DNA of 64,000 nt from positions 124,001-188,000 of the forward strand of contig JANHCV010000018.1 in the NCBI GenBank assembly GCA_025594325.1. The letters are read 5' to 3'. The notes under the pieces are model-generated. The model ran no database searches, was not told the origin of the DNA, and saw nothing but the letters and a program-made list of their open reading frames with translations. Positions 29,212-51,500 of this stretch are shown piece by piece (position 1 is the first letter of the stretch; every line of letters begins with the position of its first letter). The stretch is from Blastocladiella emersonii ATCC 22665. Lineage: Eukaryota > Fungi > Blastocladiomycota. The position numbers were made by a program, and so were the translations under genes.

Positions 29212-29372
29212 TTATTGTGCACAGTTCCGTTGGGTTTCAAGTGTACCCGCAGTCGCACCTGCTACAGAACAACTGGTTGTTGATGAGGCGAACCCAAGGC
29301 GGCGAACTTTCCATACAACCACAGGTTTGTGATCATGCAAAAGTGACATTGTGAAGTCAAAGCGCGATTTGA

Positions 29373-32300
29373 GGCGCCATTGACCATGCCCGCGACACAG
29401 AGAAGGCGATGTACGTGTACTTTGAGGACAAGAGCAAGGCGTTCGACAAGGTCCCGCACTCGATCCTGCGGCTGGCCCTGCGCCGCATCCGCCTGCCTGA
29501 GCCGTTCATTCAGTTGTACTGCACGCAGGTCCTTGAGGGTCGCACATCGCGTGTGATCACTGCGTATGGGCTCACCGAACCGATCCCGTGTCTCCGCGGC
29601 GTGCCCCAGGGCGCAGTTGAGTCCCCGCTAATGTTGTCCTGTCTCTACGATTCCCTCCTTTGTAACGATATTTCGAAAGGCGCAGATGACGCATTTCCCC
29701 TCCTCCCGTATGCAGGTCGCGGTTCCTTCAAGTCCGCGCACACTCGGCCTGGTTGCAACCCGCCGAGACGACTTTTCCCTGGCACCAAGCACCGCCCACC
29801 CGTCAAGCTCAAGAACCTGTCGTTCGTGGACGACGCGGCCTTCTTCGCGTGCACGCCAGGCGGCCTCCACCGCACCGTGGCACGCGTCGACTCGTTCAAC
29901 GCGGCCTGCGGCATTCGATCCAATGCCGCCAAGGGCGCCGTGCTGTCAATCAACTCTAAACGAGAGCCGCTGATCAAGTCCAACGACGTCGAGGTGCCAA
30001 GGATTTCGAGCGATGGAGCGTTTCGCTACCTGGGCGTCTTCCTCAACGCGACGGGCACGGGTGGCCCGGCCGTAGAGGCCATGGAGGAGACGTTCGGGCG
30101 CGCGATGCTCTCGCTGCGGAACAAGAAGATCACGGCCAAGATGGCCGTGTACGTCATCAACGCGGTCGTCTGGCCTGCCATGGTGTACCGCTCTCGCAAC
30201 TTTGTGCCCAAGCTCCGCCGCTTGCAGAAGTGGGACGCGTCCGCGCGTGCTCTCATTCGCAAGAAGCTGCATGTCGCGAGCACCTTCCACGCGTCAGCGC
30301 TCCACCATCCCGCGATCCTCGCGCTTGCGTCCATCGAGGAGCAGGTCACCCGGTACCACATGAAGGCGGTCATCTCTTCTCTCAACCACTGCGATACCAT
30401 GATCCGCACGGCAGTCCGCTGCTCGCTCTCAGCTTTGCAGACCTATCTCACGGTCCCTTACTCGCCGCTTGCCGTCCCAACCAGCGAGCCGACTGCGGAG
30501 AGTCCATGTTACTTTGGCGGCTTGCTCGAACTCATGCGCGTCCGGCGCCTCTCGATTGCCGATCTTAGCGGCGAGTATACGATCGGCAACCCCGCCACGG
30601 ACTTGCCAATTCGCCAGCTGGTGCCCTGGGGCAGATCTCTCCCACTGTCCGCCGCGCCATGCGGGGCTACTTCATCTCGAACATCTCGCAGTTTACTCAG
30701 CATGGCAAGATTGCAGATGGCATCAACCCACAGTGCGCTGAGGAGTTGCTCTCGGGCCGCTTCAACCCAGCGACCAGGTGTTTTGTGCAAGTCCCTGAGC
30801 GAACCCAGTTCATCAATCTCGCGACCTGCTTGCTCCAGGCCTATCTCGCCGACCCTCATGCCCATCCACAGTGGGGCCCGTGTGCAGCCTTTTGCACCCG
30901 CGAGCCTTACCCACTCAGTGTTGACGACGAAGTTGCTCCACCCATCAACATCCGCGAGGCCTTCACCGCAGGCCTTCGCGTGACACAAGTCCCGGCTCAG
31001 GCGGGCCCGCTCGACCTCGATCCTGCACTGGTGCCTGTCTACACGGACGGCTCCATGGTGCCAGCTGCGGACGGGGTCGGGTCGTCCCGCCTTGGAGCGG
31101 GCGTGTGGTTCCCGACGCTTGGTGTCCGTCTGTCAGCGCGCGTCTCGCCTGGCGTAGCTTCTTCTACGCGAGCCGAGGCGTGGGCGATCGCGCTTGCGGT
31201 CGCCGCGGCACCACAGCGCTCGCGGATCCACATCTACTCTGACTCCCAGGCTGCCATTGCATCGGCCATCCGCGTCCTATCGTTCCTTTCCTCCTCCTCG
31301 TCTGATTCTGGCTTTCCTTCTTCCCTCACTTCTACTGACGCATGGTCGTTTGCAGTGGCAGCCGCGCGTGCCCGCCGCGTGACCTTCACAATCTCCTGGG
31401 TCCGCGGGCACGCCGGCGTTGAGGGGAACGAGATCGCTGACGGGCTCGCCGCTGACGGGATCAATCTGGCCCAAGAGCTCGTCCTCGCTCCCCCCTTCGC
31501 CAAACAGATCCGGTTAGATGTTCAGCATGCGCTGTATTTTGATGACGTCCCCGTTCCCACATCCTCCACTGCACTCCTCAAGATCCTGTCCACTGCACGC
31601 TGCGATGCGACTATCCGCTCCAAGTCCGCCCTCCTCTCCTTCCTCCACACCTCCCCTGACCCCGATGAGCACCCTGACATGCTTGCGACCTCACTGGCCA
31701 TTGGCTCCGGCTCCCGCCCGCTCGATAAGCGCACCTCCAGCGCTGCGAACCGCGACATCGTCTATCGCGTTCGCCACCTCCTTGGGATCACACCCACTCG
31801 CTCACTACTGCACGCCCGCCATCCTACTCTAGTCACTTCACCGGTGTGTCCTAGGTGCCAAGTAGCCATTGACGACGGAAGCCACTGGATGATCTGCACC
31901 CGTAACGCCGCGGCCGTGTCCGCCGCGCTGGGCTCTGCCCAAAAGTCCATTGAGCGGTATTCTTGCCGCGCCGCTGCCTCTGTTGCCGCCGCCGCCGCCG
32001 CTACTGCTGCGGCCGCATCCACTGCACGAGCACCGAATGCGCCCACTCCACCTCCACCTCCACCTGCACCACCACCGCCTCTCTCTCCTGTCCAAGGCGA
32101 GGACCTCAGCACGCCCGGCTACGCCATGGTCGGCGAGTCCATTGCTGGTGCAACTGACGCCCTCCACAACTTTGGCACTCGACTCGCAGCGTCCATCTGG
32201 CGCGACCCCGACGCCCTCTCCCGCCTCGCCGGCTGCGTTCTACGCGTCCGCGACGTGTCGTTCGGCTCGCGGGCCCTCCAACTCGACCGCGCCCTCACCC

Positions 32301-32659
32301 GGCCCGTCCTCGCGGCCATCACGTCCGTCGCCTCCCGATCCCTCTGGCGCGGCGCCTGGCTCTCTCACTCTGCTGGCTGCACCGAGGCCGACCCACTCGA
32401 TTTTTCTGAAGCTCCGCCGCACGAGCCGCGTGAGCGGGCCCACCGCCCATTTGGCCAGCCCATTGCCACACTCAAGTTCATCAACCGCCACCACTACTGC
32501 TCTCGCTGTCTGAGCTCGCTCCATTCCCACGTCCCCCACCCGTCTGGGCGTGAAGAAAACCCGCCCGTGTGCCCGCCGTCCACCGCGGCCCAGGCGGCTC
32601 TTGTTGCAGATCCCTCCGTCCGACTTTGGTTGCTCGGTTCCCCAAGGCACATTCGGTGA
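29373..32659 (+). pseudogene. RT-RNase H-zinc knuckle polyprotein, truncated and split by one frameshift near 30630
   Basis: RT: GVPQGAVESP, SFVDD, FRYLGV. RNase H: VYTDGS, STRAE, IYSDSQ, WVRGHAGVEGNEIAD. Knuckle: CPRC-X7-H-X3-C. The two ORFs (29409-30983, 30659-32659) fuse if one G is added to GGGG at 30628-30631. Confidence 0.85.
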
Positions 32660-33211
32660 TGTGACTAGACCAAGGATCGGCGCAGTCGACGCAAGTCCAG
32701 TGGCACCAGGTGTTTGCGCGCGGTACTGACCCATCCACTTTCTCTCGTTCTGACCACGATGAAACGCATGATCCGCCACTGAATGGCGCTGACGCACAAA
32801 AGAAAAAGAAAAAGAAGGAGAAAAACAAAATAAAGAGAAACGCAACAAGAAGAACGTCCGCACAAAAAGATGGAAAAACATCTGACGAACCTCACAGGCC
32901 ATGCCCAATACCACAGCACTGCCACTGGTCCATTGGCATGTCCTCGCGCTCTAGCTGGTCACGCCAGCGTGTCTCTCTGCTCGGTCTCTCTTTACTGCTC
33001 TTCGTTCGCTCTCTTAGCTCGCTGCTCGAGCTCGCTCTCTCTTCGCCTCGTTCGCCCATCTCTCTCGTACTCCCCTCTCCTCCCACAATTCTTCCCCCTA
33101 TGCTCCTCGACGTGCACGGTCCGGGCTTGTCGTACTGCGGCTTGCCCACAAAAAGGCTGCTGCCCGTTGCACAGTGGATATTCTGGTTGCAGTCCACAAC
33201 CGCAGTTAAGG

Positions 33212-33237
33212 AATAAATGCATTGGTTCCAAAATAAA
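33212..33237 (+). terminator. Retroelement polyadenylation signal and short A-tail (repeated in every array unit)
   Basis: AATAAA-TGCATTGGTTCC-AAAA(T/A)AAA immediately before the 16-bp target duplication. Confidence 0.7.
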
Positions 33238-33831
33238 GAGGGTTCCGAGCAGCTCCTCTGTCTATCCGCGTGAAACCACTCACCCGCTGACGGACGTACA
33301 CCGCGCACCGTGCAGCGCGCACAGCACACAGCGCCCGACGCACCCCGCGGTGCGCACACGGCGCAAACGGCCACCCTGGTGTCACACACACTCGCATGAA
33401 CGGCAGGCATGCAAGGCGTCCTCAACTCAACAATGATTTATCATCCAGGCTTGCTACTCGCTCCAACGGGTGCGCCTGCCTGCCCTCCCGGTGCCGTTGA
33501 TTGATTGATGGGTGCGCCAGCCCCTGTTGCCAGCCAAGTGGCAAGCAACACCACAGCACCTGCGTCGCCCTGGCCACCGTACCTTGGAAACAGCGTAGCA
33601 GCCGTACTGCTTCACAGGGCTGCAGAGGGCTGGCTGCGGAGGGCTGAGGCGGCAGGGCTCCTGCTGCAGGAAGGAGACAGTGCTGGGGCCAAGGAGTGCT
33701 AGGGACGACAAACTGAATGGTGAATGACCCACACACCACATGCTCCTGGCAGGAGAGCGTGTGGGCGTGCGGGCCTGTGTCCGTGCGTGCCTGTGTCCGT
33801 GCGTGCCTGGATTAGACCTCCATCACAAGCG

Positions 33832-33909
33832 CCAAGTGACCAAGTGACCAAGGTGACCAAGTGACCAAGGTGACCAAGGTGACCACGGTGACCAAGGTGA
33901 CCAAGTGAC
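33832..33909. repeat. Mixed 8/9-mer microsatellite (CCAAGTGA / CCAAGGTGA), one block per unit
   Basis: Read directly. Preceded by a duplicated 16-mer CCTGTGTCCGTGCGTG at about 33774-33805. Confidence 0.9.
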
Positions 33910-34322
33910 ACACAAGCACCAAGCTAGGGTGGCCGGGCGGCCATGGAACGTACTGCATGGGTACCAATACCGTGGACTGGCCGCGGCCATTAATCGCAGC
34001 ACAGCCCTGCCTGGCTCAGGACGCGGCGGGCGTGGGAGGCGGGCAGGGTAGATAGGTAGCAGCAGCAGGACCTGGCTAGCTGGCTGTCAAACAGCACGAG
34101 TGAAGGGGTGCGTGAGGGAGGGTGTGTTGAATGAATGGATGGGTGGATGCAGGCAGACCTTCATACGTGTCGTGCGTGATGAGGATTGGCTGGCCACTAT
34201 CCACCCACCAACGCCATGGCATGGCTGCGGGTGTCGCTGCGTGCGCCTTGGCGGGTGGTAGTGGAGCTAAAGTGGTGTCGTGGGGCTCTTGGGGTCCCCT
34301 TTCCTTCCTGTCTGGCCTAGGT

Positions 34323-34337
34323 GGGTGGGTGGGTGGG
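34323..34337 (+). other. Canonical G-quadruplex motif GGGTGGGTGGGTGGG, one per unit
   Basis: Four G3 runs with 1-nt loops, read directly. Confidence 0.75.
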
Positions 34338-34506
34338 CGGACGTAGCGCGCATGCGGGCGGGCAAGCTAGGAACGTTGCTCACGCAATGGATCATGTATT
34401 TCATGGAACGTAGTCTGGACAGCAGAGAGGGGGATGTCCGGCCCAATCGGACCCTCCACGAATCACAATATGCACGCAATGAATTGACCGATGATAGGGC
34501 CGTACC

Positions 34507-35425
34507 AAACCAGCCACGTAGACAATTGTCATGGTAGTCGAACAAAACCATATTCAAATCTTTGACTACACGCTTGTCCAGCTAGCCAGGGACCCATAAA
34601 TCACAGTATCGACCCAACTAAATATTTGACAACGGAAAGATAGTAAACCAGCCTCGTACATAATTGTCATGGTACTCAAACAAAACCATATTCAAAACCT
34701 TGACTTCCCGCATGTCCAGCTGGCCAGGGACCCATAAATCACAGTATCAAACCGACAAAGTATCTGACAACAGAAATATGGTAAAACAGCCACGCGGATA
34801 ATTGTCATGGTACTCAATCAAAACCATATTCAAATCTTTGCTTTCCTGCATGTCCAGCTGGTTGAGGACCCATAAATCGTAACGTCAAAGCAACAGTATA
34901 TCTGACCATAGAAGTATAGTAAACCAGCCACTCTGGCAACTGTCATGGTACTCAAACAAAACCATACTCAAATCTTCGACTTCCCACATGTCCAGCAGGT
35001 TGGACACCCATAAATCACAGTATCAAACCAACGAAATATCTGACCACATGAGTATATATAACCGACCGCGTAGGTAATTGTCTTGATACTCAAACAAAAC
35101 CATATTCAAATCTTTCACTTCCCGCTTGTCCAGCTAGCCAGGGACCCATAAATCACAGTATCACAGCAACGCAATATCTGACCAAAGAAATATCGTAAAC
35201 CAGGCACGTAGATAATTGTCATGGTACTCAAACAAAACCATAGTCAAATCTTCGAGTGCCCCATGTCCAGGTGGGCAAGGGCCTATAAATCACAGTATTG
35301 AACCAAGAAAACACCTGACTGACGATCGGGATGTATCAAACCCGCCACGCTGATAATTGTCATGGTACTCAAACATAACCATACTCAGCCAAATCTTCGC
35401 ATACCCTCACGTCCAGGTGGGCGAG
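34507..35425. repeat. Nested AT-rich sub-satellite: 7 diverged ~138-bp monomers per unit
   Basis: Anchor AA(T/C)TGTC at 34524, 34662, 34800, 34938, 35076, 35214, 35355 (spacing 138 x5, then 141). The same spacing is seen in unit 2 (37878-38709). Confidence 0.95.
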
Positions 35426-35544
35426 GAACCAAAGCGCCAGATATTCAAATCTACCGCTTTGTGCACACTCCACTAGCCAACTCTTCGATCCCCTAATAAT
35501 GGAGCCCGTCGTCAAAGTGCACGGTCCAATCAACTAAGTAAACA

Positions 35545-35612
35545 GCCAACCTGCCAGCCTGCCAACCTGCCAGCCTGCCAGCCTGCCAACCTGCCAACCT
35601 GTCAACCTGCCA
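35545..35612. repeat. Octamer microsatellite (CCTGCCAR)n; one extra copy in 3362-bp units
   Basis: Read directly. The 8-bp difference shifts the frame of the spurious ORF (35534 vs 38884). Confidence 0.9.
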
Positions 35613-35903
35613 CCTTGCCTACCTGCTATCCGAACACCCACACCGCCTCGCAAGTCATTGGGGGCCCGCGCTCTCTGGTTGCCGTCCCAGCCAACAAACG
35701 AATGAATGATGAGCCCTGGCAGCCTGGCAGCCTGCCACACTGACAGCCTGACTGACAGCGCCCACCCAGTAGATATTATCTATCTCGTAGGTAGTCTGGG
35801 ACGACTTTGTTAGTCAATACACGACCAGTCTCCTCCTGGCTGCCGGCTCTGCTGTCCACTCCAAGTCCTGCATGATGATGGGCCAAGGAGGGTTCCGAGC
35901 AGC

Positions 35904-36557
35904 CGCGGCCCAAGCGGCTCTTGTTGCAGATCCCTCCGTCCGACTTTGGTTGCTCGGTTCCCCAAGGCACATTCGGTGATGTGACTAGACCAAGGATCGG
36001 CGCAGTCGACGCAAGTCCAGTGGCACCAGGTGTTTGCGCGCGGTACTGACCCATCCACTTTCTCTCGTTCTGACCACGATGAAACGCATGATCCGCCACT
36101 GAATGGCGCTGACGCACAAAAGAAAAAGAAAAAGAAGGAGAAAAACAAAATAAAGAGAAACGCAACAAGAAGAACGTCCGCACAAAAAGATGGAAAAACA
36201 TCTGACGAACCTCACAGGCCATGCCCAATACCACAGCACTGCCACTGGTCCATTGGCATGTCCTCGCGCTCTAGCTGGTCACGCCAGCGTGTCTCTCTGC
36301 TCGGTCTCTCTTTACTGCTCTTCGTTCGCTCTCTTAGCTCGCTGCTCGAGCTCGCTCTCTCTTCGCCTCGTTCGCCCATCTCTCTCGTACTCCCCTCTCC
36401 TCCCACAATTCTTCCCCCTATGCTCCTCGACGTGCACGGTCCGGGCTTGTCGTACTGCGGCTTGCCCACAAAAAGGCTGCTGCCCGTTGCACAGTGGATA
36501 TTCTGGTTGCAGTCCACAACCGCAGTTAAGGAATAAATGCATTGGTTCCAAAATAAA
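35904..36557 (+). mobile_element. 654-bp 3' fragment of the retroelement flanked by 16-bp TSD GAGGGTTCCGAGCAGC; further copies start at 39266, 42628, 45990, 49352, 52714, 56076, 59438, 62758
   Basis: Matches 32584-33237 (one difference seen, G32593 vs A). The 16-mer lies at 35888-35903 and 36558-36573, directly bordering the 5' truncation point and the A-tail. Confidence 0.92.
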
Positions 36558-39500
36558 GAGGGTTCCGAGCAGCTCCTCTGTCTATCCGCGTGAAACCACT
36601 CACCCGCTGACGGACGTACACCGCGCACCGTGCAGCGCGCACAGCACACAGCGCCCGACGCACCCCGCGGTGCGCACACGGCGCAAACGGCCACCCTGGT
36701 GTCACACACACTCGCATGAACGGCAGGCATGCAAGGCGTCCTCAACTCAACAATGATTTATCATCCAGGCTTGCTACTCGCTCCAACGGGTGCGCCTGCC
36801 TGCCCTCCCGGTGCCGTTGATTGATTGATGGGTGCGCCAGCCCCTGTTGCCAGCCAAGTGGCAAGCAACACCACAGCACCTGCGTCGCCCTGGCCACCGT
36901 ACCTTGGAAACAGCGTAGCAGCCGTACTGCTTCACAGGGCTGCAGAGGGCTGGCTGCGGAGGGCTGAGGCGGCAGGGCTCCTGCTGCAGGAAGGAGACAG
37001 TGCTGGGGCCAAGGAGTGCTAGGGACGACAAACTGAATGGTGAATGACCCACACACCACATGCTCCTGGCAGGAGAGCGTGTGGGCGTGCGGGCCTGTGT
37101 CCGTGCGTGCCTGTGTCCGTGCGTGCCTGGATTAGACCTCCATCACAAGCGCCAAGTGACCAAGTGACCAAGGTGACCAAGTGACCAAGGTGACCAAGGT
37201 GACCACGGTGACCAAGGTGACCAAGTGACACACAAGCACCAAGCTAGGGTGGCCGGGCGGCCATGGAACGTACTGCATGGGTACCAATACCGTGGACTGG
37301 CCGCGGCCATTAATCGCAGCACAGCCCTGCCTGGCTCAGGACGCGGCGGGCGTGGGAGGCGGGCAGGGTAGATAGGTAGCAGCAGCAGGACCTGGCTAGC
37401 TGGCTGTCAAACAGCACGAGTGAAGGGGTGCGTGAGGGAGGGTGTGTTGAATGAATGGATGGGTGGATGCAGGCAGACCTTCATACGTGTCGTGCGTGAT
37501 GAGGATTGGCTGGCCACCATCCACCCACCAACGCCATGGCATGGCTGCGGGTGTCGCTGCGTGCGCCTTGGCGGGTGGTGTTGGTGGGTGGTGTTGGTGG
37601 GTGCTGTGGTGGTAGTGGAGCTAAAGTGGTGTCGTGGGGCTCTTGGGGTCCCCTTTCCTTCCTGTCTGGCCTAGGTGGGTGGGTGGGTGGGCGGACGTAG
37701 CGCGCATGCGGGCGGGCAAGCTAGGAACGTTGCTCACGCAATGGATCATGTATTTCATGGAACGTAGTCTGGACAGCAGAGAGGGGGATGTCCGGCCCAA
37801 TCGGACCCTCCACGAATCACAATATGCACGCAATGAATTGACCGATGATAGGGCCGTACCAAACCAGCCACGTAGACAATTGTCATGGTAGTCGAACAAA
37901 ACCATATTCAAATCTTTGACTACACGCTTGTCCAGCTAGCCAGGGACCCATAAATCACAGTATCGACCCAACTAAATATTTGACAACGGAAAGATAATAA
38001 ACCAGCCTCGTACATAATTGTCATGGTACTCAAACAAAACCATAGTCAAATCTTTGACCTCCCGCATGCCCATGTGGGCAAGGACCTATAGATCAGAGTA
38101 TCGTACCAAGAAAATATCTGACCATGGAAATATAGTATACCAGCCACGTAGGTAATTGTCATGGCACTCAAACAAAACCATAGTCAAGTCTTTGACTATT
38201 CACAGGTCCAGCTGGTTAAGGACCCATAAATCGTAACGTCAAAGCAACAGTATATCTGACCATAGAAGTATAGTAAACCAGCCACTCTGGCAACTGTCAT
38301 GGTACTCAAACAAAACCATACTCAAATCTTCGACTTCCCACATGTCCAGCAGGTTGGACACCCATAAATCACAGTATCAAACCAACGAAATATCTGACCA
38401 CATGAGTATATATAACCGACCGCGTAGGTAATTGTCTTGATACTCAAACAAAACCATATTCAAATCTTTCACTTCCCGCTTGTCCAGCTAGCCAGGGACC
38501 CATAAATCACAGTATCACAGCAACGCAATATCTGACCAAAGAAATATCGTAAACCAGGCACGTAGATAATTGTCATGGTACTCAAACAAAACCATAGTCA
38601 AATCTTCGAGTGCCCCATGTCCAGGTGGGCAAGGGCCTATAAATCACAGTATTGAACCAAGAAAACACCTGACTGACGATCGGGATGTATCAAACCCGCC
38701 ACGCTGATAATTGTCATGGTACTCAAACATAACCATACTCAGCCAAATCTTCGCATACCCTCACGTCCAGGTGGGCGAGGAACCAAAGCGCCAGATATTC
38801 AAATCTACCGCTTTGTGCACACTCCACTAGCCAACTCTTCGATCCCCTAATAATGGAGCCCGTCGTCAAAGTGCACGGTCCAATCAACTAAGTAAACAGC
38901 CAACCTGCCAGCCTGCCAACCTGCCAGCCTGCCAGCCTGCCAGCCTGCCAACCTGCCAACCTGTCAACCTGCCACCTTGCCTACCTGCTATCCGAACACC
39001 CACACCGCCTCGCAAGTCATTGGGGGCCCGCGCTCTCTGGTTGCCGTCCCAGCCAACAAACGAATGAATGATGAGCCCTGGCAGCCTGGCAGCCTGCCAC
39101 ACTGACAGCCTGACTGACAGCGCCCACCCAGTAGATATTATCTATCTCGTAGGTAGTCTGGGACGACTTTGTTAGTCAATACACGACCAGTCTCCTCCTG
39201 GCTGCCGGCTCTGCTGTCCACTCCAAGTCCTGCATGATGATGGGCCAAGGAGGGTTCCGAGCAGCCGCGGCCCAAGCGGCTCTTGTTGCAGATCCCTCCG
39301 TCCGACTTTGGTTGCTCGGTTCCCCAAGGCACATTCGGTGATGTGACTAGACCAAGGATCGGCGCAGTCGACGCAAGTCCAGTGGCACCAGGTGTTTGCG
39401 CGCGGTACTGACCCATCCACTTTCTCTCGTTCTGACCACGATGAAACGCATGATCCGCCACTGAATGGCGCTGACGCACAAAAGAAAAAGAAAAAGAAGG

Positions 39501-42500
39501 AGAAAAACAAAATAAAGAGAAACGCAACAAGAAGAACGTCCGCACAAAAAGATGGAAAAACATCTGACGAACCTCACAGGCCATGCCCAATACCACAGCA
39601 CTGCCACTGGTCCATTGGCATGTCCTCGCGCTCTAGCTGGTCACGCCAGCGTGTCTCTCTGCTCGGTCTCTCTTTACTGCTCTTCGTTCGCTCTCTTAGC
39701 TCGCTGCTCGAGCTCGCTCTCTCTTCGCCTCGTTCGCCCATCTCTCTCGTACTCCCCTCTCCTCCCACAATTCTTCCCCCTATGCTCCTCGACGTGCACG
39801 GTCCGGGCTTGTCGTACTGCGGCTTGCCCACAAAAAGGCTGCTGCCCGTTGCACAGTGGATATTCTGGTTGCAGTCCACAACCGCAGTTAAGGAATAAAT
39901 GCATTGGTTCCAAAAAAAAGAGGGTTCCGAGCAGCTCCTCTGTCTATCCGCGTGAAACCACTCACCCGCTGACGGACGTACACCGCGCACCGTGCAGCGC
40001 GCACAGCACACAGCGCCCGACGCACCCCGCGGTGCGCACACGGCGCAAACGGCCACCCTGGTGTCACACACACTCGCATGAACGGCAGGCATGCAAGGCG
40101 TCCTCAACTCAACAATGATTTATCATCCAGGCTTGCTACTCGCTCCAACGGGTGCGCCTGCCTGCCCTCCCGGTGCCGTTGATTGATTGATGGGTGCGCC
40201 AGCCCCTGTTGCCAGCCAAGTGGCAAGCAACACCACAGCACCTGCGTCGCCCTGGCCACCGTACCTTGGAAACAGCGTAGCAGCCGTACTGCTTCACAGG
40301 GCTGCAGAGGGCTGGCTGCGGAGGGCTGAGGCGGCAGGGCTCCTGCTGCAGGAAGGAGACAGTGCTGGGGCCAAGGAGTGCTAGGGACGACAAACTGAAT
40401 GGTGAATGACCCACACACCACATGCTCCTGGCAGGAGAGCGTGTGGGCGTGCGGGCCTGTGTCCGTGCGTGCCTGTGTCCGTGCGTGCCTGGATTAGACC
40501 TCCATCACAAGCGCCAAGTGACCAAGTGACCAAGGTGACCAAGTGACCAAGGTGACCAAGGTGACCACGGTGACCAAGGTGACCAAGTGACACACAAGCA
40601 CCAAGCTAGGGTGGCCGGGCGGCCATGGAACGTACTGCATGGGTACCAATACCGTGGACTGGCCGCGGCCATTAATCGCAGCACAGCCCTGCCTGGCTCA
40701 GGACGCGGCGGGCGTGGGAGGCGGGCAGGGTAGATAGGTAGCAGCAGCAGGACCTGGCTAGCTGGCTGTCAAACAGCACGAGTGAAGGGGTGCGTGAGGG
40801 AGGGTGTGTTGAATGAATGGATGGGTGGATGCAGGCAGACCTTCATACGTGTCGTGCGTGATGAGGATTGGCTGGCCACCATCCACCCACCAACGCCATG
40901 GCATGGCTGCGGGTGTCGCTGCGTGCGCCTTGGCGGGTGGTGTTGGTGGGTGGTGTTGGTGGGTGCTGTGGTGGTAGTGGAGCTAAAGTGGTGTCGTGGG
41001 GCTCTTGGGGTCCCCTTTCCTTCCTGTCTGGCCTAGGTGGGTGGGTGGGTGGGCGGACGTAGCGCGCATGCGGGCGGGCAAGCTAGGAACGTTGCTCACG
41101 CAATGGATCATGTATTTCATGGAACGTAGTCTGGACAGCAGAGAGGGGGATGTCCGGCCCAATCGGACCCTCCACGAATCACAATATGCACGCAATGAAT
41201 TGACCGATGATAGGGCCGTACCAAACCAGCCACGTAGACAATTGTCATGGTAGTCGAACAAAACCATATTCAAATCTTTGACTACACGCTTGTCCAGCTA
41301 GCCAGGGACCCATAAATCACAGTATCGACCCAACTAAATATTTGACAACGGAAAGATAATAAACCAGCCTCGTACATAATTGTCATGGTACTCAAACAAA
41401 ACCATAGTCAAATCTTTGACCTCCCGCATGCCCATGTGGGCAAGGACCTATAGATCAGAGTATCGTACCAAGAAAATATCTGACCATGGAAATATAGTAT
41501 ACCAGCCACGTAGGTAATTGTCATGGCACTCAAACAAAACCATAGTCAAGTCTTTGACTATTCACAGGTCCAGCTGGTTAAGGACCCATAAATCGTAACG
41601 TCAAAGCAACAGTATATCTGACCATAGAAGTATAGTAAACCAGCCACTCTGGCAACTGTCATGGTACTCAAACAAAACCATACTCAAATCTTCGACTTCC
41701 CACATGTCCAGCAGGTTGGACACCCATAAATCACAGTATCAAACCAACGAAATATCTGACCACATGAGTATATATAACCGACCGCGTAGGTAATTGTCTT
41801 GATACTCAAACAAAACCATATTCAAATCTTTCACTTCCCGCTTGTCCAGCTAGCCAGGGACCCATAAATCACAGTATCACAGCAACGCAATATCTGACCA
41901 AAGAAATATCGTAAACCAGGCACGTAGATAATTGTCATGGTACTCAAACAAAACCATAGTCAAATCTTCGAGTGCCCCATGTCCAGGTGGGCAAGGGCCT
42001 ATAAATCACAGTATTGAACCAAGAAAACACCTGACTGACGATCGGGATGTATCAAACCCGCCACGCTGATAATTGTCATGGTACTCAAACATAACCATAC
42101 TCAGCCAAATCTTCGCATACCCTCACGTCCAGGTGGGCGAGGAACCAAAGCGCCAGATATTCAAATCTACCGCTTTGTGCACACTCCACTAGCCAACTCT
42201 TCGATCCCCTAATAATGGAGCCCGTCGTCAAAGTGCACGGTCCAATCAACTAAGTAAACAGCCAACCTGCCAGCCTGCCAACCTGCCAGCCTGCCAGCCT
42301 GCCAGCCTGCCAACCTGCCAACCTGTCAACCTGCCACCTTGCCTACCTGCTATCCGAACACCCACACCGCCTCGCAAGTCATTGGGGGCCCGCGCTCTCT
42401 GGTTGCCGTCCCAGCCAACAAACGAATGAATGATGAGCCCTGGCAGCCTGGCAGCCTGCCACACTGACAGCCTGACTGACAGCGCCCACCCAGTAGATAT

Positions 42501-45500
42501 TATCTATCTCGTAGGTAGTCTGGGACGACTTTGTTAGTCAATACACGACCAGTCTCCTCCTGGCTGCCGGCTCTGCTGTCCACTCCAAGTCCTGCATGAT
42601 GATGGGCCAAGGAGGGTTCCGAGCAGCCGCGGCCCAAGCGGCTCTTGTTGCAGATCCCTCCGTCCGACTTTGGTTGCTCGGTTCCCCAAGGCACATTCGG
42701 TGATGTGACTAGACCAAGGATCGGCGCAGTCGACGCAAGTCCAGTGGCACCAGGTGTTTGCGCGCGGTACTGACCCATCCACTTTCTCTCGTTCTGACCA
42801 CGATGAAACGCATGATCCGCCACTGAATGGCGCTGACGCACAAAAGAAAAAGAAAAAGAAGGAGAAAAACAAAATAAAGAGAAACGCAACAAGAAGAACG
42901 TCCGCACAAAAAGATGGAAAAACATCTGACGAACCTCACAGGCCATGCCCAATACCACAGCACTGCCACTGGTCCATTGGCATGTCCTCGCGCTCTAGCT
43001 GGTCACGCCAGCGTGTCTCTCTGCTCGGTCTCTCTTTACTGCTCTTCGTTCGCTCTCTTAGCTCGCTGCTCGAGCTCGCTCTCTCTTCGCCTCGTTCGCC
43101 CATCTCTCTCGTACTCCCCTCTCCTCCCACAATTCTTCCCCCTATGCTCCTCGACGTGCACGGTCCGGGCTTGTCGTACTGCGGCTTGCCCACAAAAAGG
43201 CTGCTGCCCGTTGCACAGTGGATATTCTGGTTGCAGTCCACAACCGCAGTTAAGGAATAAATGCATTGGTTCCAAAATAAAGAGGGTTCCGAGCAGCTCC
43301 TCTGTCTATCCGCGTGAAACCACTCACCCGCTGACGGACGTACACCGCGCACCGTGCAGCGCGCACAGCACACAGCGCCCGACGCACCCCGCGGTGCGCA
43401 CACGGCGCAAACGGCCACCCTGGTGTCACACACACTCGCATGAACGGCAGGCATGCAAGGCGTCCTCAACTCAACAATGATTTATCATCCAGGCTTGCTA
43501 CTCGCTCCAACGGGTGCGCCTGCCTGCCCTCCCGGTGCCGTTGATTGATTGATGGGTGCGCCAGCCCCTGTTGCCAGCCAAGTGGCAAGCAACACCACAG
43601 CACCTGCGTCGCCCTGGCCACCGTACCTTGGAAACAGCGTAGCAGCCGTACTGCTTCACAGGGCTGCAGAGGGCTGGCTGCGGAGGGCTGAGGCGGCAGG
43701 GCTCCTGCTGCAGGAAGGAGACAGTGCTGGGGCCAAGGAGTGCTAGGGACGACAAACTGAATGGTGAATGACCCACACACCACATGCTCCTGGCAGGAGA
43801 GCGTGTGGGCGTGCGGGCCTGTGTCCGTGCGTGCCTGTGTCCGTGCGTGCCTGGATTAGACCTCCATCACAAGCGCCAAGTGACCAAGTGACCAAGGTGA
43901 CCAAGTGACCAAGGTGACCAAGGTGACCACGGTGACCAAGGTGACCAAGTGACACACAAGCACCAAGCTAGGGTGGCCGGGCGGCCATGGAACGTACTGC
44001 ATGGGTACCAATACCGTGGACTGGCCGCGGCCATTAATCGCAGCACAGCCCTGCCTGGCTCAGGACGCGGCGGGCGTGGGAGGCGGGCAGGGTAGATAGG
44101 TAGCAGCAGCAGGACCTGGCTAGCTGGCTGTCAAACAGCACGAGTGAAGGGGTGCGTGAGGGAGGGTGTGTTGAATGAATGGATGGGTGGATGCAGGCAG
44201 ACCTTCATACGTGTCGTGCGTGATGAGGATTGGCTGGCCACCATCCACCCACCAACGCCATGGCATGGCTGCGGGTGTCGCTGCGTGCGCCTTGGCGGGT
44301 GGTGTTGGTGGGTGGTGTTGGTGGGTGCTGTGGTGGTAGTGGAGCTAAAGTGGTGTCGTGGGGCTCTTGGGGTCCCCTTTCCTTCCTGTCTGGCCTAGGT
44401 GGGTGGGTGGGTGGGCGGACGTAGCGCGCATGCGGGCGGGCAAGCTAGGAACGTTGCTCACGCAATGGATCATGTATTTCATGGAACGTAGTCTGGACAG
44501 CAGAGAGGGGGATGTCCGGCCCAATCGGACCCTCCACGAATCACAATATGCACGCAATGAATTGACCGATGATAGGGCCGTACCAAACCAGCCACGTAGA
44601 CAATTGTCATGGTAGTCGAACAAAACCATATTCAAATCTTTGACTACACGCTTGTCCAGCTAGCCAGGGACCCATAAATCACAGTATCGACCCAACTAAA
44701 TATTTGACAACGGAAAGATAATAAACCAGCCTCGTACATAATTGTCATGGTACTCAAACAAAACCATAGTCAAATCTTTGACCTCCCGCATGCCCATGTG
44801 GGCAAGGACCTATAGATCAGAGTATCGTACCAAGAAAATATCTGACCATGGAAATATAGTATACCAGCCACGTAGGTAATTGTCATGGCACTCAAACAAA
44901 ACCATAGTCAAGTCTTTGACTATTCACAGGTCCAGCTGGTTAAGGACCCATAAATCGTAACGTCAAAGCAACAGTATATCTGACCATAGAAGTATAGTAA
45001 ACCAGCCACTCTGGCAACTGTCATGGTACTCAAACAAAACCATACTCAAATCTTCGACTTCCCACATGTCCAGCAGGTTGGACACCCATAAATCACAGTA
45101 TCAAACCAACGAAATATCTGACCACATGAGTATATATAACCGACCGCGTAGGTAATTGTCTTGATACTCAAACAAAACCATATTCAAATCTTTCACTTCC
45201 CGCTTGTCCAGCTAGCCAGGGACCCATAAATCACAGTATCACAGCAACGCAATATCTGACCAAAGAAATATCGTAAACCAGGCACGTAGATAATTGTCAT
45301 GGTACTCAAACAAAACCATAGTCAAATCTTCGAGTGCCCCATGTCCAGGTGGGCAAGGGCCTATAAATCACAGTATTGAACCAAGAAAACACCTGACTGA
45401 CGATCGGGATGTATCAAACCCGCCACGCTGATAATTGTCATGGTACTCAAACATAACCATACTCAGCCAAATCTTCGCATACCCTCACGTCCAGGTGGGC

Positions 45501-48500
45501 GAGGAACCAAAGCGCCAGATATTCAAATCTACCGCTTTGTGCACACTCCACTAGCCAACTCTTCGATCCCCTAATAATGGAGCCCGTCGTCAAAGTGCAC
45601 GGTCCAATCAACTAAGTAAACAGCCAACCTGCCAGCCTGCCAACCTGCCAGCCTGCCAGCCTGCCAGCCTGCCAACCTGCCAACCTGTCAACCTGCCACC
45701 TTGCCTACCTGCTATCCGAACACCCACACCGCCTCGCAAGTCATTGGGGGCCCGCGCTCTCTGGTTGCCGTCCCAGCCAACAAACGAATGAATGATGAGC
45801 CCTGGCAGCCTGGCAGCCTGCCACACTGACAGCCTGACTGACAGCGCCCACCCAGTAGATATTATCTATCTCGTAGGTAGTCTGGGACGACTTTGTTAGT
45901 CAATACACGACCAGTCTCCTCCTGGCTGCCGGCTCTGCTGTCCACTCCAAGTCCTGCATGATGATGGGCCAAGGAGGGTTCCGAGCAGCCGCGGCCCAAG
46001 CGGCTCTTGTTGCAGATCCCTCCGTCCGACTTTGGTTGCTCGGTTCCCCAAGGCACATTCGGTGATGTGACTAGACCAAGGATCGGCGCAGTCGACGCAA
46101 GTCCAGTGGCACCAGGTGTTTGCGCGCGGTACTGACCCATCCACTTTCTCTCGTTCTGACCACGATGAAACGCATGATCCGCCACTGAATGGCGCTGACG
46201 CACAAAAGAAAAAGAAAAAGAAGGAGAAAAACAAAATAAAGAGAAACGCAACAAGAAGAACGTCCGCACAAAAAGATGGAAAAACATCTGACGAACCTCA
46301 CAGGCCATGCCCAATACCACAGCACTGCCACTGGTCCATTGGCATGTCCTCGCGCTCTAGCTGGTCACGCCAGCGTGTCTCTCTGCTCGGTCTCTCTTTA
46401 CTGCTCTTCGTTCGCTCTCTTAGCTCGCTGCTCGAGCTCGCTCTCTCTTCGCCTCGTTCGCCCATCTCTCTCGTACTCCCCTCTCCTCCCACAATTCTTC
46501 CCCCTATGCTCCTCGACGTGCACGGTCCGGGCTTGTCGTACTGCGGCTTGCCCACAAAAAGGCTGCTGCCCGTTGCACAGTGGATATTCTGGTTGCAGTC
46601 CACAACCGCAGTTAAGGAATAAATGCATTGGTTCCAAAAAAAAGAGGGTTCCGAGCAGCTCCTCTGTCTATCCGCGTGAAACCACTCACCCGCTGACGGA
46701 CGTACACCGCGCACCGTGCAGCGCGCACAGCACACAGCGCCCGACGCACCCCGCGGTGCGCACACGGCGCAAACGGCCACCCTGGTGTCACACACACTCG
46801 CATGAACGGCAGGCATGCAAGGCGTCCTCAACTCAACAATGATTTATCATCCAGGCTTGCTACTCGCTCCAACGGGTGCGCCTGCCTGCCCTCCCGGTGC
46901 CGTTGATTGATTGATGGGTGCGCCAGCCCCTGTTGCCAGCCAAGTGGCAAGCAACACCACAGCACCTGCGTCGCCCTGGCCACCGTACCTTGGAAACAGC
47001 GTAGCAGCCGTACTGCTTCACAGGGCTGCAGAGGGCTGGCTGCGGAGGGCTGAGGCGGCAGGGCTCCTGCTGCAGGAAGGAGACAGTGCTGGGGCCAAGG
47101 AGTGCTAGGGACGACAAACTGAATGGTGAATGACCCACACACCACATGCTCCTGGCAGGAGAGCGTGTGGGCGTGCGGGCCTGTGTCCGTGCGTGCCTGT
47201 GTCCGTGCGTGCCTGGATTAGACCTCCATCACAAGCGCCAAGTGACCAAGTGACCAAGGTGACCAAGTGACCAAGGTGACCAAGGTGACCACGGTGACCA
47301 AGGTGACCAAGTGACACACAAGCACCAAGCTAGGGTGGCCGGGCGGCCATGGAACGTACTGCATGGGTACCAATACCGTGGACTGGCCGCGGCCATTAAT
47401 CGCAGCACAGCCCTGCCTGGCTCAGGACGCGGCGGGCGTGGGAGGCGGGCAGGGTAGATAGGTAGCAGCAGCAGGACCTGGCTAGCTGGCTGTCAAACAG
47501 CACGAGTGAAGGGGTGCGTGAGGGAGGGTGTGTTGAATGAATGGATGGGTGGATGCAGGCAGACCTTCATACGTGTCGTGCGTGATGAGGATTGGCTGGC
47601 CACCATCCACCCACCAACGCCATGGCATGGCTGCGGGTGTCGCTGCGTGCGCCTTGGCGGGTGGTGTTGGTGGGTGGTGTTGGTGGGTGCTGTGGTGGTA
47701 GTGGAGCTAAAGTGGTGTCGTGGGGCTCTTGGGGTCCCCTTTCCTTCCTGTCTGGCCTAGGTGGGTGGGTGGGTGGGCGGACGTAGCGCGCATGCGGGCG
47801 GGCAAGCTAGGAACGTTGCTCACGCAATGGATCATGTATTTCATGGAACGTAGTCTGGACAGCAGAGAGGGGGATGTCCGGCCCAATCGGACCCTCCACG
47901 AATCACAATATGCACGCAATGAATTGACCGATGATAGGGCCGTACCAAACCAGCCACGTAGACAATTGTCATGGTAGTCGAACAAAACCATATTCAAATC
48001 TTTGACTACACGCTTGTCCAGCTAGCCAGGGACCCATAAATCACAGTATCGACCCAACTAAATATTTGACAACGGAAAGATAATAAACCAGCCTCGTACA
48101 TAATTGTCATGGTACTCAAACAAAACCATAGTCAAATCTTTGACCTCCCGCATGCCCATGTGGGCAAGGACCTATAGATCAGAGTATCGTACCAAGAAAA
48201 TATCTGACCATGGAAATATAGTATACCAGCCACGTAGGTAATTGTCATGGCACTCAAACAAAACCATAGTCAAGTCTTTGACTATTCACAGGTCCAGCTG
48301 GTTAAGGACCCATAAATCGTAACGTCAAAGCAACAGTATATCTGACCATAGAAGTATAGTAAACCAGCCACTCTGGCAACTGTCATGGTACTCAAACAAA
48401 ACCATACTCAAATCTTCGACTTCCCACATGTCCAGCAGGTTGGACACCCATAAATCACAGTATCAAACCAACGAAATATCTGACCACATGAGTATATATA

Positions 48501-51500
48501 ACCGACCGCGTAGGTAATTGTCTTGATACTCAAACAAAACCATATTCAAATCTTTCACTTCCCGCTTGTCCAGCTAGCCAGGGACCCATAAATCACAGTA
48601 TCACAGCAACGCAATATCTGACCAAAGAAATATCGTAAACCAGGCACGTAGATAATTGTCATGGTACTCAAACAAAACCATAGTCAAATCTTCGAGTGCC
48701 CCATGTCCAGGTGGGCAAGGGCCTATAAATCACAGTATTGAACCAAGAAAACACCTGACTGACGATCGGGATGTATCAAACCCGCCACGCTGATAATTGT
48801 CATGGTACTCAAACATAACCATACTCAGCCAAATCTTCGCATACCCTCACGTCCAGGTGGGCGAGGAACCAAAGCGCCAGATATTCAAATCTACCGCTTT
48901 GTGCACACTCCACTAGCCAACTCTTCGATCCCCTAATAATGGAGCCCGTCGTCAAAGTGCACGGTCCAATCAACTAAGTAAACAGCCAACCTGCCAGCCT
49001 GCCAACCTGCCAGCCTGCCAGCCTGCCAGCCTGCCAACCTGCCAACCTGTCAACCTGCCACCTTGCCTACCTGCTATCCGAACACCCACACCGCCTCGCA
49101 AGTCATTGGGGGCCCGCGCTCTCTGGTTGCCGTCCCAGCCAACAAACGAATGAATGATGAGCCCTGGCAGCCTGGCAGCCTGCCACACTGACAGCCTGAC
49201 TGACAGCGCCCACCCAGTAGATATTATCTATCTCGTAGGTAGTCTGGGACGACTTTGTTAGTCAATACACGACCAGTCTCCTCCTGGCTGCCGGCTCTGC
49301 TGTCCACTCCAAGTCCTGCATGATGATGGGCCAAGGAGGGTTCCGAGCAGCCGCGGCCCAAGCGGCTCTTGTTGCAGATCCCTCCGTCCGACTTTGGTTG
49401 CTCGGTTCCCCAAGGCACATTCGGTGATGTGACTAGACCAAGGATCGGCGCAGTCGACGCAAGTCCAGTGGCACCAGGTGTTTGCGCGCGGTACTGACCC
49501 ATCCACTTTCTCTCGTTCTGACCACGATGAAACGCATGATCCGCCACTGAATGGCGCTGACGCACAAAAGAAAAAGAAAAAGAAGGAGAAAAACAAAATA
49601 AAGAGAAACGCAACAAGAAGAACGTCCGCACAAAAAGATGGAAAAACATCTGACGAACCTCACAGGCCATGCCCAATACCACAGCACTGCCACTGGTCCA
49701 TTGGCATGTCCTCGCGCTCTAGCTGGTCACGCCAGCGTGTCTCTCTGCTCGGTCTCTCTTTACTGCTCTTCGTTCGCTCTCTTAGCTCGCTGCTCGAGCT
49801 CGCTCTCTCTTCGCCTCGTTCGCCCATCTCTCTCGTACTCCCCTCTCCTCCCACAATTCTTCCCCCTATGCTCCTCGACGTGCACGGTCCGGGCTTGTCG
49901 TACTGCGGCTTGCCCACAAAAAGGCTGCTGCCCGTTGCACAGTGGATATTCTGGTTGCAGTCCACAACCGCAGTTAAGGAATAAATGCATTGGTTCCAAA
50001 AAAAAGAGGGTTCCGAGCAGCTCCTCTGTCTATCCGCGTGAAACCACTCACCCGCTGACGGACGTACACCGCGCACCGTGCAGCGCGCACAGCACACAGC
50101 GCCCGACGCACCCCGCGGTGCGCACACGGCGCAAACGGCCACCCTGGTGTCACACACACTCGCATGAACGGCAGGCATGCAAGGCGTCCTCAACTCAACA
50201 ATGATTTATCATCCAGGCTTGCTACTCGCTCCAACGGGTGCGCCTGCCTGCCCTCCCGGTGCCGTTGATTGATTGATGGGTGCGCCAGCCCCTGTTGCCA
50301 GCCAAGTGGCAAGCAACACCACAGCACCTGCGTCGCCCTGGCCACCGTACCTTGGAAACAGCGTAGCAGCCGTACTGCTTCACAGGGCTGCAGAGGGCTG
50401 GCTGCGGAGGGCTGAGGCGGCAGGGCTCCTGCTGCAGGAAGGAGACAGTGCTGGGGCCAAGGAGTGCTAGGGACGACAAACTGAATGGTGAATGACCCAC
50501 ACACCACATGCTCCTGGCAGGAGAGCGTGTGGGCGTGCGGGCCTGTGTCCGTGCGTGCCTGTGTCCGTGCGTGCCTGGATTAGACCTCCATCACAAGCGC
50601 CAAGTGACCAAGTGACCAAGGTGACCAAGTGACCAAGGTGACCAAGGTGACCACGGTGACCAAGGTGACCAAGTGACACACAAGCACCAAGCTAGGGTGG
50701 CCGGGCGGCCATGGAACGTACTGCATGGGTACCAATACCGTGGACTGGCCGCGGCCATTAATCGCAGCACAGCCCTGCCTGGCTCAGGACGCGGCGGGCG
50801 TGGGAGGCGGGCAGGGTAGATAGGTAGCAGCAGCAGGACCTGGCTAGCTGGCTGTCAAACAGCACGAGTGAAGGGGTGCGTGAGGGAGGGTGTGTTGAAT
50901 GAATGGATGGGTGGATGCAGGCAGACCTTCATACGTGTCGTGCGTGATGAGGATTGGCTGGCCACCATCCACCCACCAACGCCATGGCATGGCTGCGGGT
51001 GTCGCTGCGTGCGCCTTGGCGGGTGGTGTTGGTGGGTGGTGTTGGTGGGTGCTGTGGTGGTAGTGGAGCTAAAGTGGTGTCGTGGGGCTCTTGGGGTCCC
51101 CTTTCCTTCCTGTCTGGCCTAGGTGGGTGGGTGGGTGGGCGGACGTAGCGCGCATGCGGGCGGGCAAGCTAGGAACGTTGCTCACGCAATGGATCATGTA
51201 TTTCATGGAACGTAGTCTGGACAGCAGAGAGGGGGATGTCCGGCCCAATCGGACCCTCCACGAATCACAATATGCACGCAATGAATTGACCGATGATAGG
51301 GCCGTACCAAACCAGCCACGTAGACAATTGTCATGGTAGTCGAACAAAACCATATTCAAATCTTTGACTACACGCTTGTCCAGCTAGCCAGGGACCCATA
51401 AATCACAGTATCGACCCAACTAAATATTTGACAACGGAAAGATAATAAACCAGCCTCGTACATAATTGTCATGGTACTCAAACAAAACCATAGTCAAATC

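Follow-up and report, generated by a model that had tools for sequence, protein, structure and literature searches.

HeT-A and TART form head-to-tail terminal arrays with variable 5' truncation at the chromosome end, and R1 and R2 are site-specific LINEs whose insertions have one target sequence in common. Inside centromeric satellite arrays, post-integration copying of retrotransposons has been reported for ATHILA in Arabidopsis CEN180 (10.1101/2021.05.30.446350). A centromere atlas preprint of 2026 tests for such copying by common target-site duplications, and saw satellite centromeres in 0 of 49 fungi (10.64898/2026.09.17.752431). Composite satellites and satellites derived from transposable elements (TEs) have also been described (PMC3648361; 10.1101/158386 (PMC5932611); PMC7004042). 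In Mucor, the domains listed for Grem-LINE1 are Zf, AP endonuclease, RVT and zf-RVT, the element has two ORFs, and its copies point away from the centromere core (10.1101/706580). A preliminary description of the DNA studied here had named Grem-LINE1 as a parallel with reverse transcriptase (RT) and RNase H; the pericentromeric position of the LINE in Mucor holds, but RNase H is not among the listed domains. A literature search for satellites in Blastocladiella gave no paper. Here we describe a satellite of this fungus whose unit contains a fragment of a LINE.

Results

A LINE fragment between direct repeats in each satellite unit

We analysed a 64-kb stretch of Blastocladiella emersonii DNA, hereafter the window, whose right part is occupied by a tandem array (Table 1). 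The first position of the array, 32584, falls within a longer LINE copy, and the array continues to the window end. Its units measure 3320 or 3362 bp, corresponding to a satellite unit of 2650 or 2692 bp plus 670 bp, and both periods were observed, the seven units with the period of 3362 bp having 0–3 differences among them. The 16-mer GAGGGTTCCGAGCAGC has 19 exact copies in the window, where chance alone would give 0.07. These copies constitute nine pairs, each spaced exactly 670 bp, and one unpaired copy. The 654 bp enclosed by a pair consists of 76 nt of ORF end with the stop codon, a 570-nt 3' UTR and an 8-nt A tail. As the preliminary description had claimed, truncation point, tail and perfect 16-bp direct repeats were the same in all nine full units of the window. 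The tail, which is short and has a polymorphic T, reads AAAATAAA in the unit at 35888 and AAAAAAAA in other units. The 5' junction shows a microhomology of 1 nt (C) to the LINE, which sets the length of the duplicated target at 15–16 bp.

The LINE from which the fragment derives is a non-LTR retrotransposon with AP endonuclease, RT and RNase H. The ORF end in the fragment aligns to the end of the ORF at 30659..32659, which bears the RNase H. Pfam domains RVT_1 and RNase_H were found in the LINE copy of the window, and Exo_endo_phos and RVT_1 in a 2347-aa ORF of another copy (L018). In a PDB search, the RT had matches at about 1e-12 to both L1 ORF2p and R2, which do not separate the two affinities. 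Longer copies of the LINE reach at least 2.4 kb further 5' than the unit fragment. The 3' end of the unit fragment is the genuine terminus of the family: dispersed, unrelated copies stop at ...GGTTCC followed by 7–11 A, with unrelated flanks beyond. The family has two 3' UTR variants, both with an AATAAA conserved at the same distance from the tail (12 nt), and for the variant other than that in the units, no periodic in-unit copies were found. The 16-mer was absent at both positions from the ~20 LINE copies checked and is not within the LINE. An Rfam search at E values up to 0.1 across two units (32000–40000) gave no RNA family match, so that the unit is not accounted for by any known RNA gene.

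Table 1. Coordinates of the array, the LINE sequences and their target sites in the window.
Feature	Position	Strand	Remarks
Dead LINE copy (3,863 bp) forming the left edge of the array	29375..33237	+	5'-truncated in the RT domain
Tandem array of composite units	33238..64000	+	Runs to the end of contig C10; on C11 in inverted contig orientation
Lone 16-mer after the edge LINE	33238..33253	+	Without 5' partner upstream in the window
5' target-site duplication copy GAGGGTTCCGAGCAGC	35888..35903	+	Recurs at 39250, 42612, 45974, 49336, 52698, 56060, 59422, 62742
Last 76 nt of the long LINE ORF including stop	35904..35979	+	5'-truncation point; aligns to 32584-32659
LINE 3' UTR (variant A)	35980..36549	+	AATAAA 12 nt upstream of the tail (36532-36537)
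8-nt A tail	36550..36557	+	Other copies of the LINE family have 7-11 A at the same point
3' target-site duplication copy	36558..36573	+	Recurs 670 bp past every 5' copy (pairs 35888/36558, 39250/39920 ... last 62742/63412)
Empty target site ACCCTCCACGAATCACA of the C17 insertion	37805..37821	+	Once per unit
Further ACCCTCCACGAATCACA copies	34451, 41167, 44529, 47891, 51253, 54615, 57977, 61305	+	One per unit

Empty sites and the probable spread of the tagged unit

The empty allele, GGGCCAAG-16-mer-TCCTCTG, has ~180 occurrences in the genome at ≤3 mismatches, 36 of them exact. They are located in sister arrays on C17, C2, C5, C4 and C7, with periods of 2766/2790, 3124/3148 and about 4110–4180 bp. 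The exact matches are all on C17, and none is on C10 or C11. In a MAFFT alignment, filled and empty units differed by exactly 670 columns (654 + 16), and outside inserts the C17 unit was 96.3% identical to the window unit. The 16-bp repeat flanks the fragment in filled units and is single in the empty ones, as a target-site duplication should be. The preliminary description had called for a search for the empty allele and had presumed an ancestral unit of ~2.65–2.69 kb that predated the insertion. The sister arrays contain the empty allele, and in them the satellite unit exists independently of the insert. It had also envisaged that the empty site might never occur and that the 16-mer might be internal to full-length elements; empty sites proved abundant and the 16-mer lies outside the LINE.

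On C10 and C11, all of the 24 assembled units are filled, and they differ at 0–4 of 654 positions. They have one truncation point, and together with a LINE copy at the array edge (see below) they have one tail length and one 3' junction, indicating that the satellite was amplified after the transposon insertion. Judged from the sequence, the fragment has the features of a 5'-truncated LINE insertion made by target-primed reverse transcription: homology to the 3' part of an autonomous non-LTR element with endonuclease and RT, the 3' terminus of that element with an A tail, and a target-site duplication. The array has those of a satellite amplified after a transposon insertion: the same junctions in all units, and a unit that also occurs without the insert. 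The filled units have length variants of 3311, 3320, 3328 and 3362 bp and at least five point haplotypes on the two contigs. Some C11 units retain the ancestral bases of the family at fragment positions 263 and 611. Every array breaks the assembly at contig ends, so that repeat order inside arrays may be mis-assembled, and our counts are of assembled units only. In the middle of the C10/C11 arrays, unit coordinates are those of search matches. C10 and C11 are probably one array within a chromosome, as their orientation and common unit suggest. C11 has an (AAACCT)n telomere at the opposite end, 2.8 Mb from the array, and C2 is likewise telomeric at its far end. AAACCT is the telomere motif published for this genome and agrees with the motif found here; TTAGGG had no match anywhere in the genome.

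We put the probability at roughly 90% that one target-primed LINE insertion occurred in one ~2.7-kb unit and that array turnover then spread the tagged unit. The preliminary description had likewise argued for a single insertion spread by amplification or homogenisation, which the single truncation point in 24 units and the ~180 empty sites support. It had also argued against additions in the style of HeT-A/TART and had asked where the array lies relative to telomeres; we found one truncation point and a chromosome-internal array, and rejected a terminal array on these grounds.

According to the single-insertion reading, a LINE with a poly(A) tail and an AP-type endonuclease would have integrated once in a pre-existing array of ~2.7-kb units. 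The anatomy of the insertion suggests that the endonuclease nicked just left of GAGGGTT, that reverse transcription halted after 654 nt, having copied the 3' UTR and the final 25 codons, and that a staggered second cut produced the 15–16-bp duplication. Unequal exchange, gene conversion, or contraction followed by re-expansion may then have led to an array in which all units of the chromosome descend from the tagged unit, with no later exchange with arrays of other chromosomes. The four length variants and the few point variants would have arisen after the spread.

A second insertion in the C17 array

We found that in the C17 array a second, independent LINE insertion has become fixed, which measures 1,250 bp and is flanked by a 17-bp duplication of its own. 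The window units are the empty allele for this insertion and carry its target site (Table 1). Because each of the two arrays is the empty allele for the insertion of the other, there has been no exchange of units between arrays on different chromosomes since then. Both in-unit fragments have 3' UTR variant A and lie in the + orientation of the array. The C17 insertion, which is new here, is an independent precedent for the fixation of a truncated LINE in an array. Two LINE-bearing variants have swept arrays despite only about 25 dispersed copies of the LINE, which could hint at non-neutral spread.

LINE copies at the array borders

The left border of the array in the window is a dead LINE copy, also new here, whose RT and RNase H are encoded by two different ORFs that overlap. 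On the 5' side the copy is flanked by unique DNA, and a protein-kinase ORF lies 385 bp upstream. The terminal 654 bp of the copy align in register with the fragment of the units, have the same tail and 3' junction, and represent the derived array haplotype of the adjoining unit (C263, C611). Position 11 is G in the edge copy and A in every array copy examined. When a target-site duplication of this 3.9-kb copy was sought at the 5' flank, only a 4-nt GAGG match was seen, which we do not regard as meaningful. Such a copy with the same 3' junction is not predicted by a simple one-insertion model, and a second event is needed. We lean towards recombination between a unit fragment and a sibling LINE copy that lay outside the array, the DNA in between having been deleted. 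A LINE 3' end abuts the array, and faces it, at 10 of the 11 array edges examined, a count that excludes about three edges (the partners of C17, C16 and C21).

Function of the fragment and alternative explanations

The fragment is in all likelihood a neutral passenger. A poly(A)-signal role is putative and is suggested by the AATAAA conserved 12 nt before the tail. The arrays are possibly centromeres, a candidate role with which their layout, chromosome-specific internal arrays at contig ends, is consistent. It seems unlikely that the LINE prefers priming on the satellite or its chromatin and shapes these candidate centromeres, units with the 3' UTR and poly(A) signal being favoured and sweeping arrays twice. 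Resolution of the integrations would then often entail a loss of DNA at the 5' side, giving sharp array borders; borders defined by LINE integrations would fit the edges that end in a LINE 3' junction.

Less likely still, the tagged unit spread through usefulness or selfishness, its AATAAA and 3' UTR shaping unit-length transcripts that were favoured in centromere function or drive. Two independent variant-A fragments in + orientation did sweep two of about seven arrays, the AATAAA was kept in place, and the dispersed LINE family is small. However, about five other arrays are without any LINE fragment, and 0–3 differences per 3362 bp imply a turnover quick enough for neutral fixation.

We also considered that the 3.9-kb edge LINE might be primary and the array a tandem duplication of its 3' end and downstream DNA, the upstream 16-mer being a duplication junction rather than a target-site duplication. 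The junction and tail that the edge copy has in common with the unit fragments, and the capping of nearly all arrays by LINE 3' ends, agree with such an origin. Nevertheless, it is very improbable: in the sister arrays the satellite unit is older and runs uninterrupted through the site, where the 16-mer is present once; the chance that a random duplication breakpoint would land exactly 16 bp beyond the nick is ~1 in 170; and the edge copy has the array-derived bases C263 and C611, which are missing from some units.

That a site-specific LINE hit each unit separately, as R1/R2 do in rDNA, is close to refuted. The 17 independent LINE 3' junctions, consisting of ...GGTTCC and an A-rich tail (mostly 7–11 A), lie at 17 different sequences, and although G directly follows the tail in 11 of the 17, this is a weak preference. 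LINE 3' junctions are concentrated in array DNA (10/11 edges and the two in-unit sites); against repeated targeting, however, truncation point, tail length and duplication are identical in 24/24 units, and ~180 identical target sites in other arrays were left unhit. Finally, each array lies at a contig end and duplicates had been purged from the published assembly, but multiplication of one insertion-bearing unit by mis-assembly of a collapsed repeat has next to no probability, given that the filled units of the two contigs comprise at least four length variants and five point haplotypes, that a 3.4-kb unit fits ~three times in the mean read of 10.5 kb, and that the assembly has no empty unit of the sequence type of this array. 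Repeated site-specific insertion, terminal addition, duplication from the edge and assembly artefact were all four rejected.

Discussion

The insertion serves as a natural barcode for array turnover, in that a whole multi-unit array (at least 24 assembled units) descends from one tagged unit. The insertion postdates the separation of the C10/C11 array lineage from that of C17 and predates the 3311/3320/3328/3362-bp length variants. As chromosome-specific markers, the filled and empty junctions can be used directly in PCR, FISH and assays based on reads. If the arrays are centromeres, their turnover and transposon targeting would be directly testable in a culturable early-diverging fungus by means of the LINE tags and LINE-capped borders.

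The LINE resembles HeT-A/TART and R1/R2 in that its 3' ends are attached to a particular chromosomal compartment. Unlike HeT-A/TART, the truncations here are uniform and the arrays are not at the chromosome end, and unlike R1/R2, no single target sequence is used. As with Grem-LINE1, we are dealing with a low-copy LINE of an early-diverging fungus that is concentrated beside centromere cores, be they candidate or proven, with a strong orientation bias. However, the cores in Mucor are short unique sequences rather than satellites, and Grem-LINE1 points away from the core, whereas the LINE 3' ends here face the array. Composite and TE-derived satellites likewise have transposon sequence within a tandemly amplified unit, but their repeat is usually made from the element itself (LTR, internal tandem repeats or double insertions); here an older, non-TE unit gained a TE fragment, and both junctions and the empty allele are preserved. 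The case of ATHILA in CEN180 is alike in that a retrotransposon enters a satellite and is then duplicated with flanking repeats by array homogenisation, the single integration being marked by identical duplications. In Arabidopsis, the megabases of 178-bp repeats contain five insertion-bearing gaps that have each undergone one duplication, whereas here a LINE fragment joined the unit and took over the whole array, twice, in a fungus.

A LINE fragment within the satellite units

In the genome, 32.65 Mb in 21 contigs, the window (G000:C10:124001-188000) contains a tandem satellite array with seven successive 3362-bp units, differing from one another at 0-3 bases, and 3320-bp variant units on both sides of this block, distinguished by ~42 substitutions and two small deletions. 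A 16-mer, GAGGGTTCCGAGCAGC, had 19 exact matches in the window, against 0.07 expected: nine pairs at exactly 670-bp spacing and one unpaired copy. The 654 bp enclosed are the same in all nine pairs and consist of the three parts listed in the table. The truncation point, A tail and 16-bp target-site duplication that a preliminary description had reported for nine units are correct as written.

A longer copy of the same non-LTR retrotransposon (LINE), with reverse transcriptase (RT) and RNase H domains, was found upstream of the array, and other genomic copies reach at least 2.4 kb further 5'. In one copy (L018), an ORF of 2347 aa encodes an AP-type endonuclease (residues 725-927) and an RT (residues 1308-1596); the RT is similar both to human L1 ORF2p and to R2 proteins (~1e-12), matches that do not separate the clades. 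All 17 independent 3' junctions of the family read ...GGTTCC followed by an A-rich tail (mostly 7-11 A) and then unrelated sequence. As these junctions end alike, the 3' end of the unit fragment is the real 3' terminus of the element and its 5' end is internal, and the fragment is therefore built like a LINE insertion truncated at its 5' end. The 16-mer is not part of the LINE: in longer copies the truncation point is preceded by ...GCCGTCCAC, so that target and element share 1 nt of microhomology where the fragment begins.

The satellite itself is internally repeated, with 6.4 copies of a 138-bp subrepeat (~77% identical) in every unit, along with runs of a 9-mer, CCAAGGTGA, and an 8-mer, GCCAACCT. 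The seven 3362-bp units vary at four positions, every one of them in the LINE fragment (fragment positions 250, 253, 263 and 651) and none in the 2.7-kb satellite proper, small numbers that could have arisen by chance.

Extent of the insertion and empty sites in sister arrays

We counted 16 filled units on C10, the contig of the window, which stops within the array at 213,278, and 8 further copies on the opposite strand at the end of contig C11, a layout expected of a single array that the assembler had divided. C2 and C11 both start with repeats of (AAACCT)n, the telomere motif published for Blastocladiella emersonii in its genome paper, and carry their satellite arrays at the other end; TTAGGG repeats do not occur in the genome. 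The C11 telomere is 2.8 Mb away from the array end; the location of the array relative to telomeres, which the preliminary description had proposed to check, is therefore chromosome-internal. For fifteen filled units every base was read; they show 0-4 differences over 654 positions and have a single truncation point, tail length and duplication. The other nine are represented by search matches of full length with 99-100% identity. At positions 263 and 611 some C11 units carry the bases of all other family members and C10 units carry derived bases, and filled units are 3311, 3320, 3328 or 3362 bp long. As filled units carry both, the insertion is older than these point and length variants. Mid-array stretches and about three array edges were judged by search-match coordinates, and the order of units inside the arrays may be mis-assembled.

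If a single insertion had later been amplified, as had been proposed, an allele without the fragment was predicted, and looking for it provided the decisive test. The empty allele, GGGCCAAG-16mer-TCCTCTG, had ~180 matches in the genome at ≤3 mismatches, including the arrays on C17, C2, C5, C4 and C7; an exact empty site was not found on C10 or C11. In an alignment of one unit per array, the window unit had a single additional block, exactly 670 columns long (654 + 16), relative to the other units, and the flanks in the sister arrays were continuous across the insertion site with one 16-mer per empty unit. The additional length of C2 and C5 units lies directly upstream of the 138-bp subrepeat tract. 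The shared truncation point, tail length and duplication, together with the empty sites, support a single insertion later amplified, and we read one integration whose descendants then replaced the whole array. The integration is established; its spread would have proceeded by unequal exchange, by conversion, or by contraction and re-expansion.

Positions of features (window positions unless prefixed; C, contigs of the same genome; L, stretches read from them)
Feature	Position	Detail
Tandem array	32584 to window end	
Protein-kinase ORF	27598-29375 (entry)	Pkinase, E = 3e-60
Left-edge LINE copy	29375-33237	3,863 bp
Unpaired 16-mer	33238	
Fragment, part 1		final 76 nt of long ORF, stop codon included
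Fragment, part 2		570-nt 3' UTR; AATAAA 12 nt before its end
Fragment, part 3		8-nt A tail with polymorphic T
Units with the four variable positions	36558-60091	
138-bp subrepeat tract	34507-35387	
9-mer run; 8-mer run	33832-33909; 35545-35626	
Telomere repeats	C2:16-868; C11:24-95	
Empty sites, C17		36, exact; unit period ~4.11-4.18 kb, one 4272
Empty sites, C2 and C5		19 and at least 45; unit period 3124/3148 bp
Empty sites, C4 and C7		14 and 29; unit period 2766/2790 bp
C17 insertion	L008:291-1574 and 4401-5684 (C17:2200290-2201573 and so on)	
Empty sites for C17 insertion	34451, 37805, 41167 and onward	one ACCCTCCACGAATCACA per window unit
3' UTR variants compared	32692-33237; L015:3684-4134	LINE positions ~3318-3863 of window copy
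Edge junctions, LINE 3' end	33237/33238; L005:9788; L007:5801; L011:3727; L012:6732; L016:7957; L015:3684; L021:434; L020:7702; L023:5048	
C2 edge	L009:7192-7214	5'-truncated LINE end
Deletion in C11 and C5 caps	L005:7079-9343; L012:7181-9443	LINE positions 396 to 1446
Deletion in C7 and C9	L016:4072-6857; L019:4039-6035	LINE positions 2467 to 3561
C20 edge	L020:2928-10000 (C20:1785927-1792999)	

A second insertion in the C17 array

All four C17 units examined contain a 1,250-bp insertion, and the remaining units give periodic matches. It comprises the 3'-terminal 1,237 nt of the LINE and an A10GAA tail, has a 17-bp duplication of its own, ACCCTCCACGAATCACA, on either side, and is independent of the window insertion. 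Outside the inserts, window and C17 units are 96.3% identical, and the C10/C11 array is empty at the site of the C17 insertion, as is the C17 array at the site of the window insertion, which rules out unit exchange between these two chromosomes since the insertions. Fixation of a LINE fragment in an array is thus shown to be a recurrent process. At least 61 of the ~85 assembled LINE 3' ends come from satellite amplification and not from retrotransposition. Two variants of the 3' UTR exist in the family, with an identity of ~71% across the final ~540 bp against 88-97% for the ORF parts; variant A is found in both in-unit insertions and variant B in most edge caps.

The coding capacity of the window fragment is 25 terminal codons and nothing beyond. 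Each unit gains from it a conserved AATAAA and a tail, a putative poly(A) signal. The fragment has probably been a neutral passenger, the main alternative being that LINE-tagged units were favoured.

LINE copies at the array edges

A copy of this LINE directly adjoins the array at all 11 edges read. At ten (C10, C11, C17, C4, C7, C5, C19, C16, C20 and C21) the 3' end and A tail face the array (one-sided binomial, 0.006), the sole exception being the C2 edge. The junctions occur at various points of the unit and on both strands of the array, and the caps converge on the array in all three pairs with both edges known (C10/C11, C7/C4 and C20/C19). Because target priming takes place at the 3' junction, the bias suggests a preference of the endonuclease, or of the priming step, for array DNA or its chromatin, with resolution of the LINE 5' end often falling outside the array. 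Identical internal deletions are shared by the C11 and C5 caps and, at other positions, by C7 and C9; occurring on different chromosomes, they stem from templates that already lacked the sequence or from duplication at the DNA level. At the C20 edge, two nested LINE copies separate a piece of array in inverted orientation, to their left, from the forward array to their right, which points to an inversion or to rearrangement of the 5' junction.

The copy at the left edge of the window array is 5'-truncated within the RT domain, with RT and RNase H in separate overlapping ORFs. Its 5' flank is unique DNA without the 16-mer, and the intact-looking protein-kinase ORF ends 385 bp before the LINE, so that gene-dense DNA adjoins this side of the array without a degenerate repeat zone. 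Its final 654 bp align with the unit fragment in the same register, carry the derived array bases C263 and C611 and the tail variant of the neighbouring unit, and are followed by the 16-mer and the array. Position 11 is G, against A in every array copy examined; both bases occur in the wider family. The older empty unit of the sister arrays, continuous across the site, contradicts the view that this copy is primary and that the array grew by duplication of its 3' end, a view that would also need a breakpoint exactly 16 bp beyond the nick site. The simplest reading, which we consider reasonably probable, is recombination or conversion between a unit fragment and a sibling LINE to the left, with the interval deleted.

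Comparison with known systems

The preliminary description had drawn a parallel with Grem-LINE1 of Mucor as an element with RT and RNase H. The parallel is looser than this: the domains listed for Grem-LINE1 are Zf, AP, RVT and zf-RVT, and RNase H is not among them (10.1101/706580). Moreover, Grem-LINE1 points away from a short non-satellite core, whereas here LINE 3' ends face satellite arrays. Taking into account that a centromere atlas preprint found no satellite centromeres among 49 fungi (10.64898/2026.09.17.752431) and that the Blastocladiella genome paper makes no mention of centromeres, satellites or transposons, the fungal setting of these arrays, which are candidate centromeres, is unusual.

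Satellites incorporating or derived from transposons were already known (PMC3648361; 10.1101/158386, PMC5932611; PMC7004042). In Arabidopsis, retrotransposons that had integrated into centromeric satellites were afterwards copied there, as five duplicated ATHILA gaps document (10.1101/2021.05.30.446350), and shared duplications serve as the test for such copying in the atlas preprint. The Blastocladiella case is a clean and extreme instance of post-integration copying in satellites, differing from those known in that a whole array was converted, twice independently, with both junctions and the empty alleles kept.
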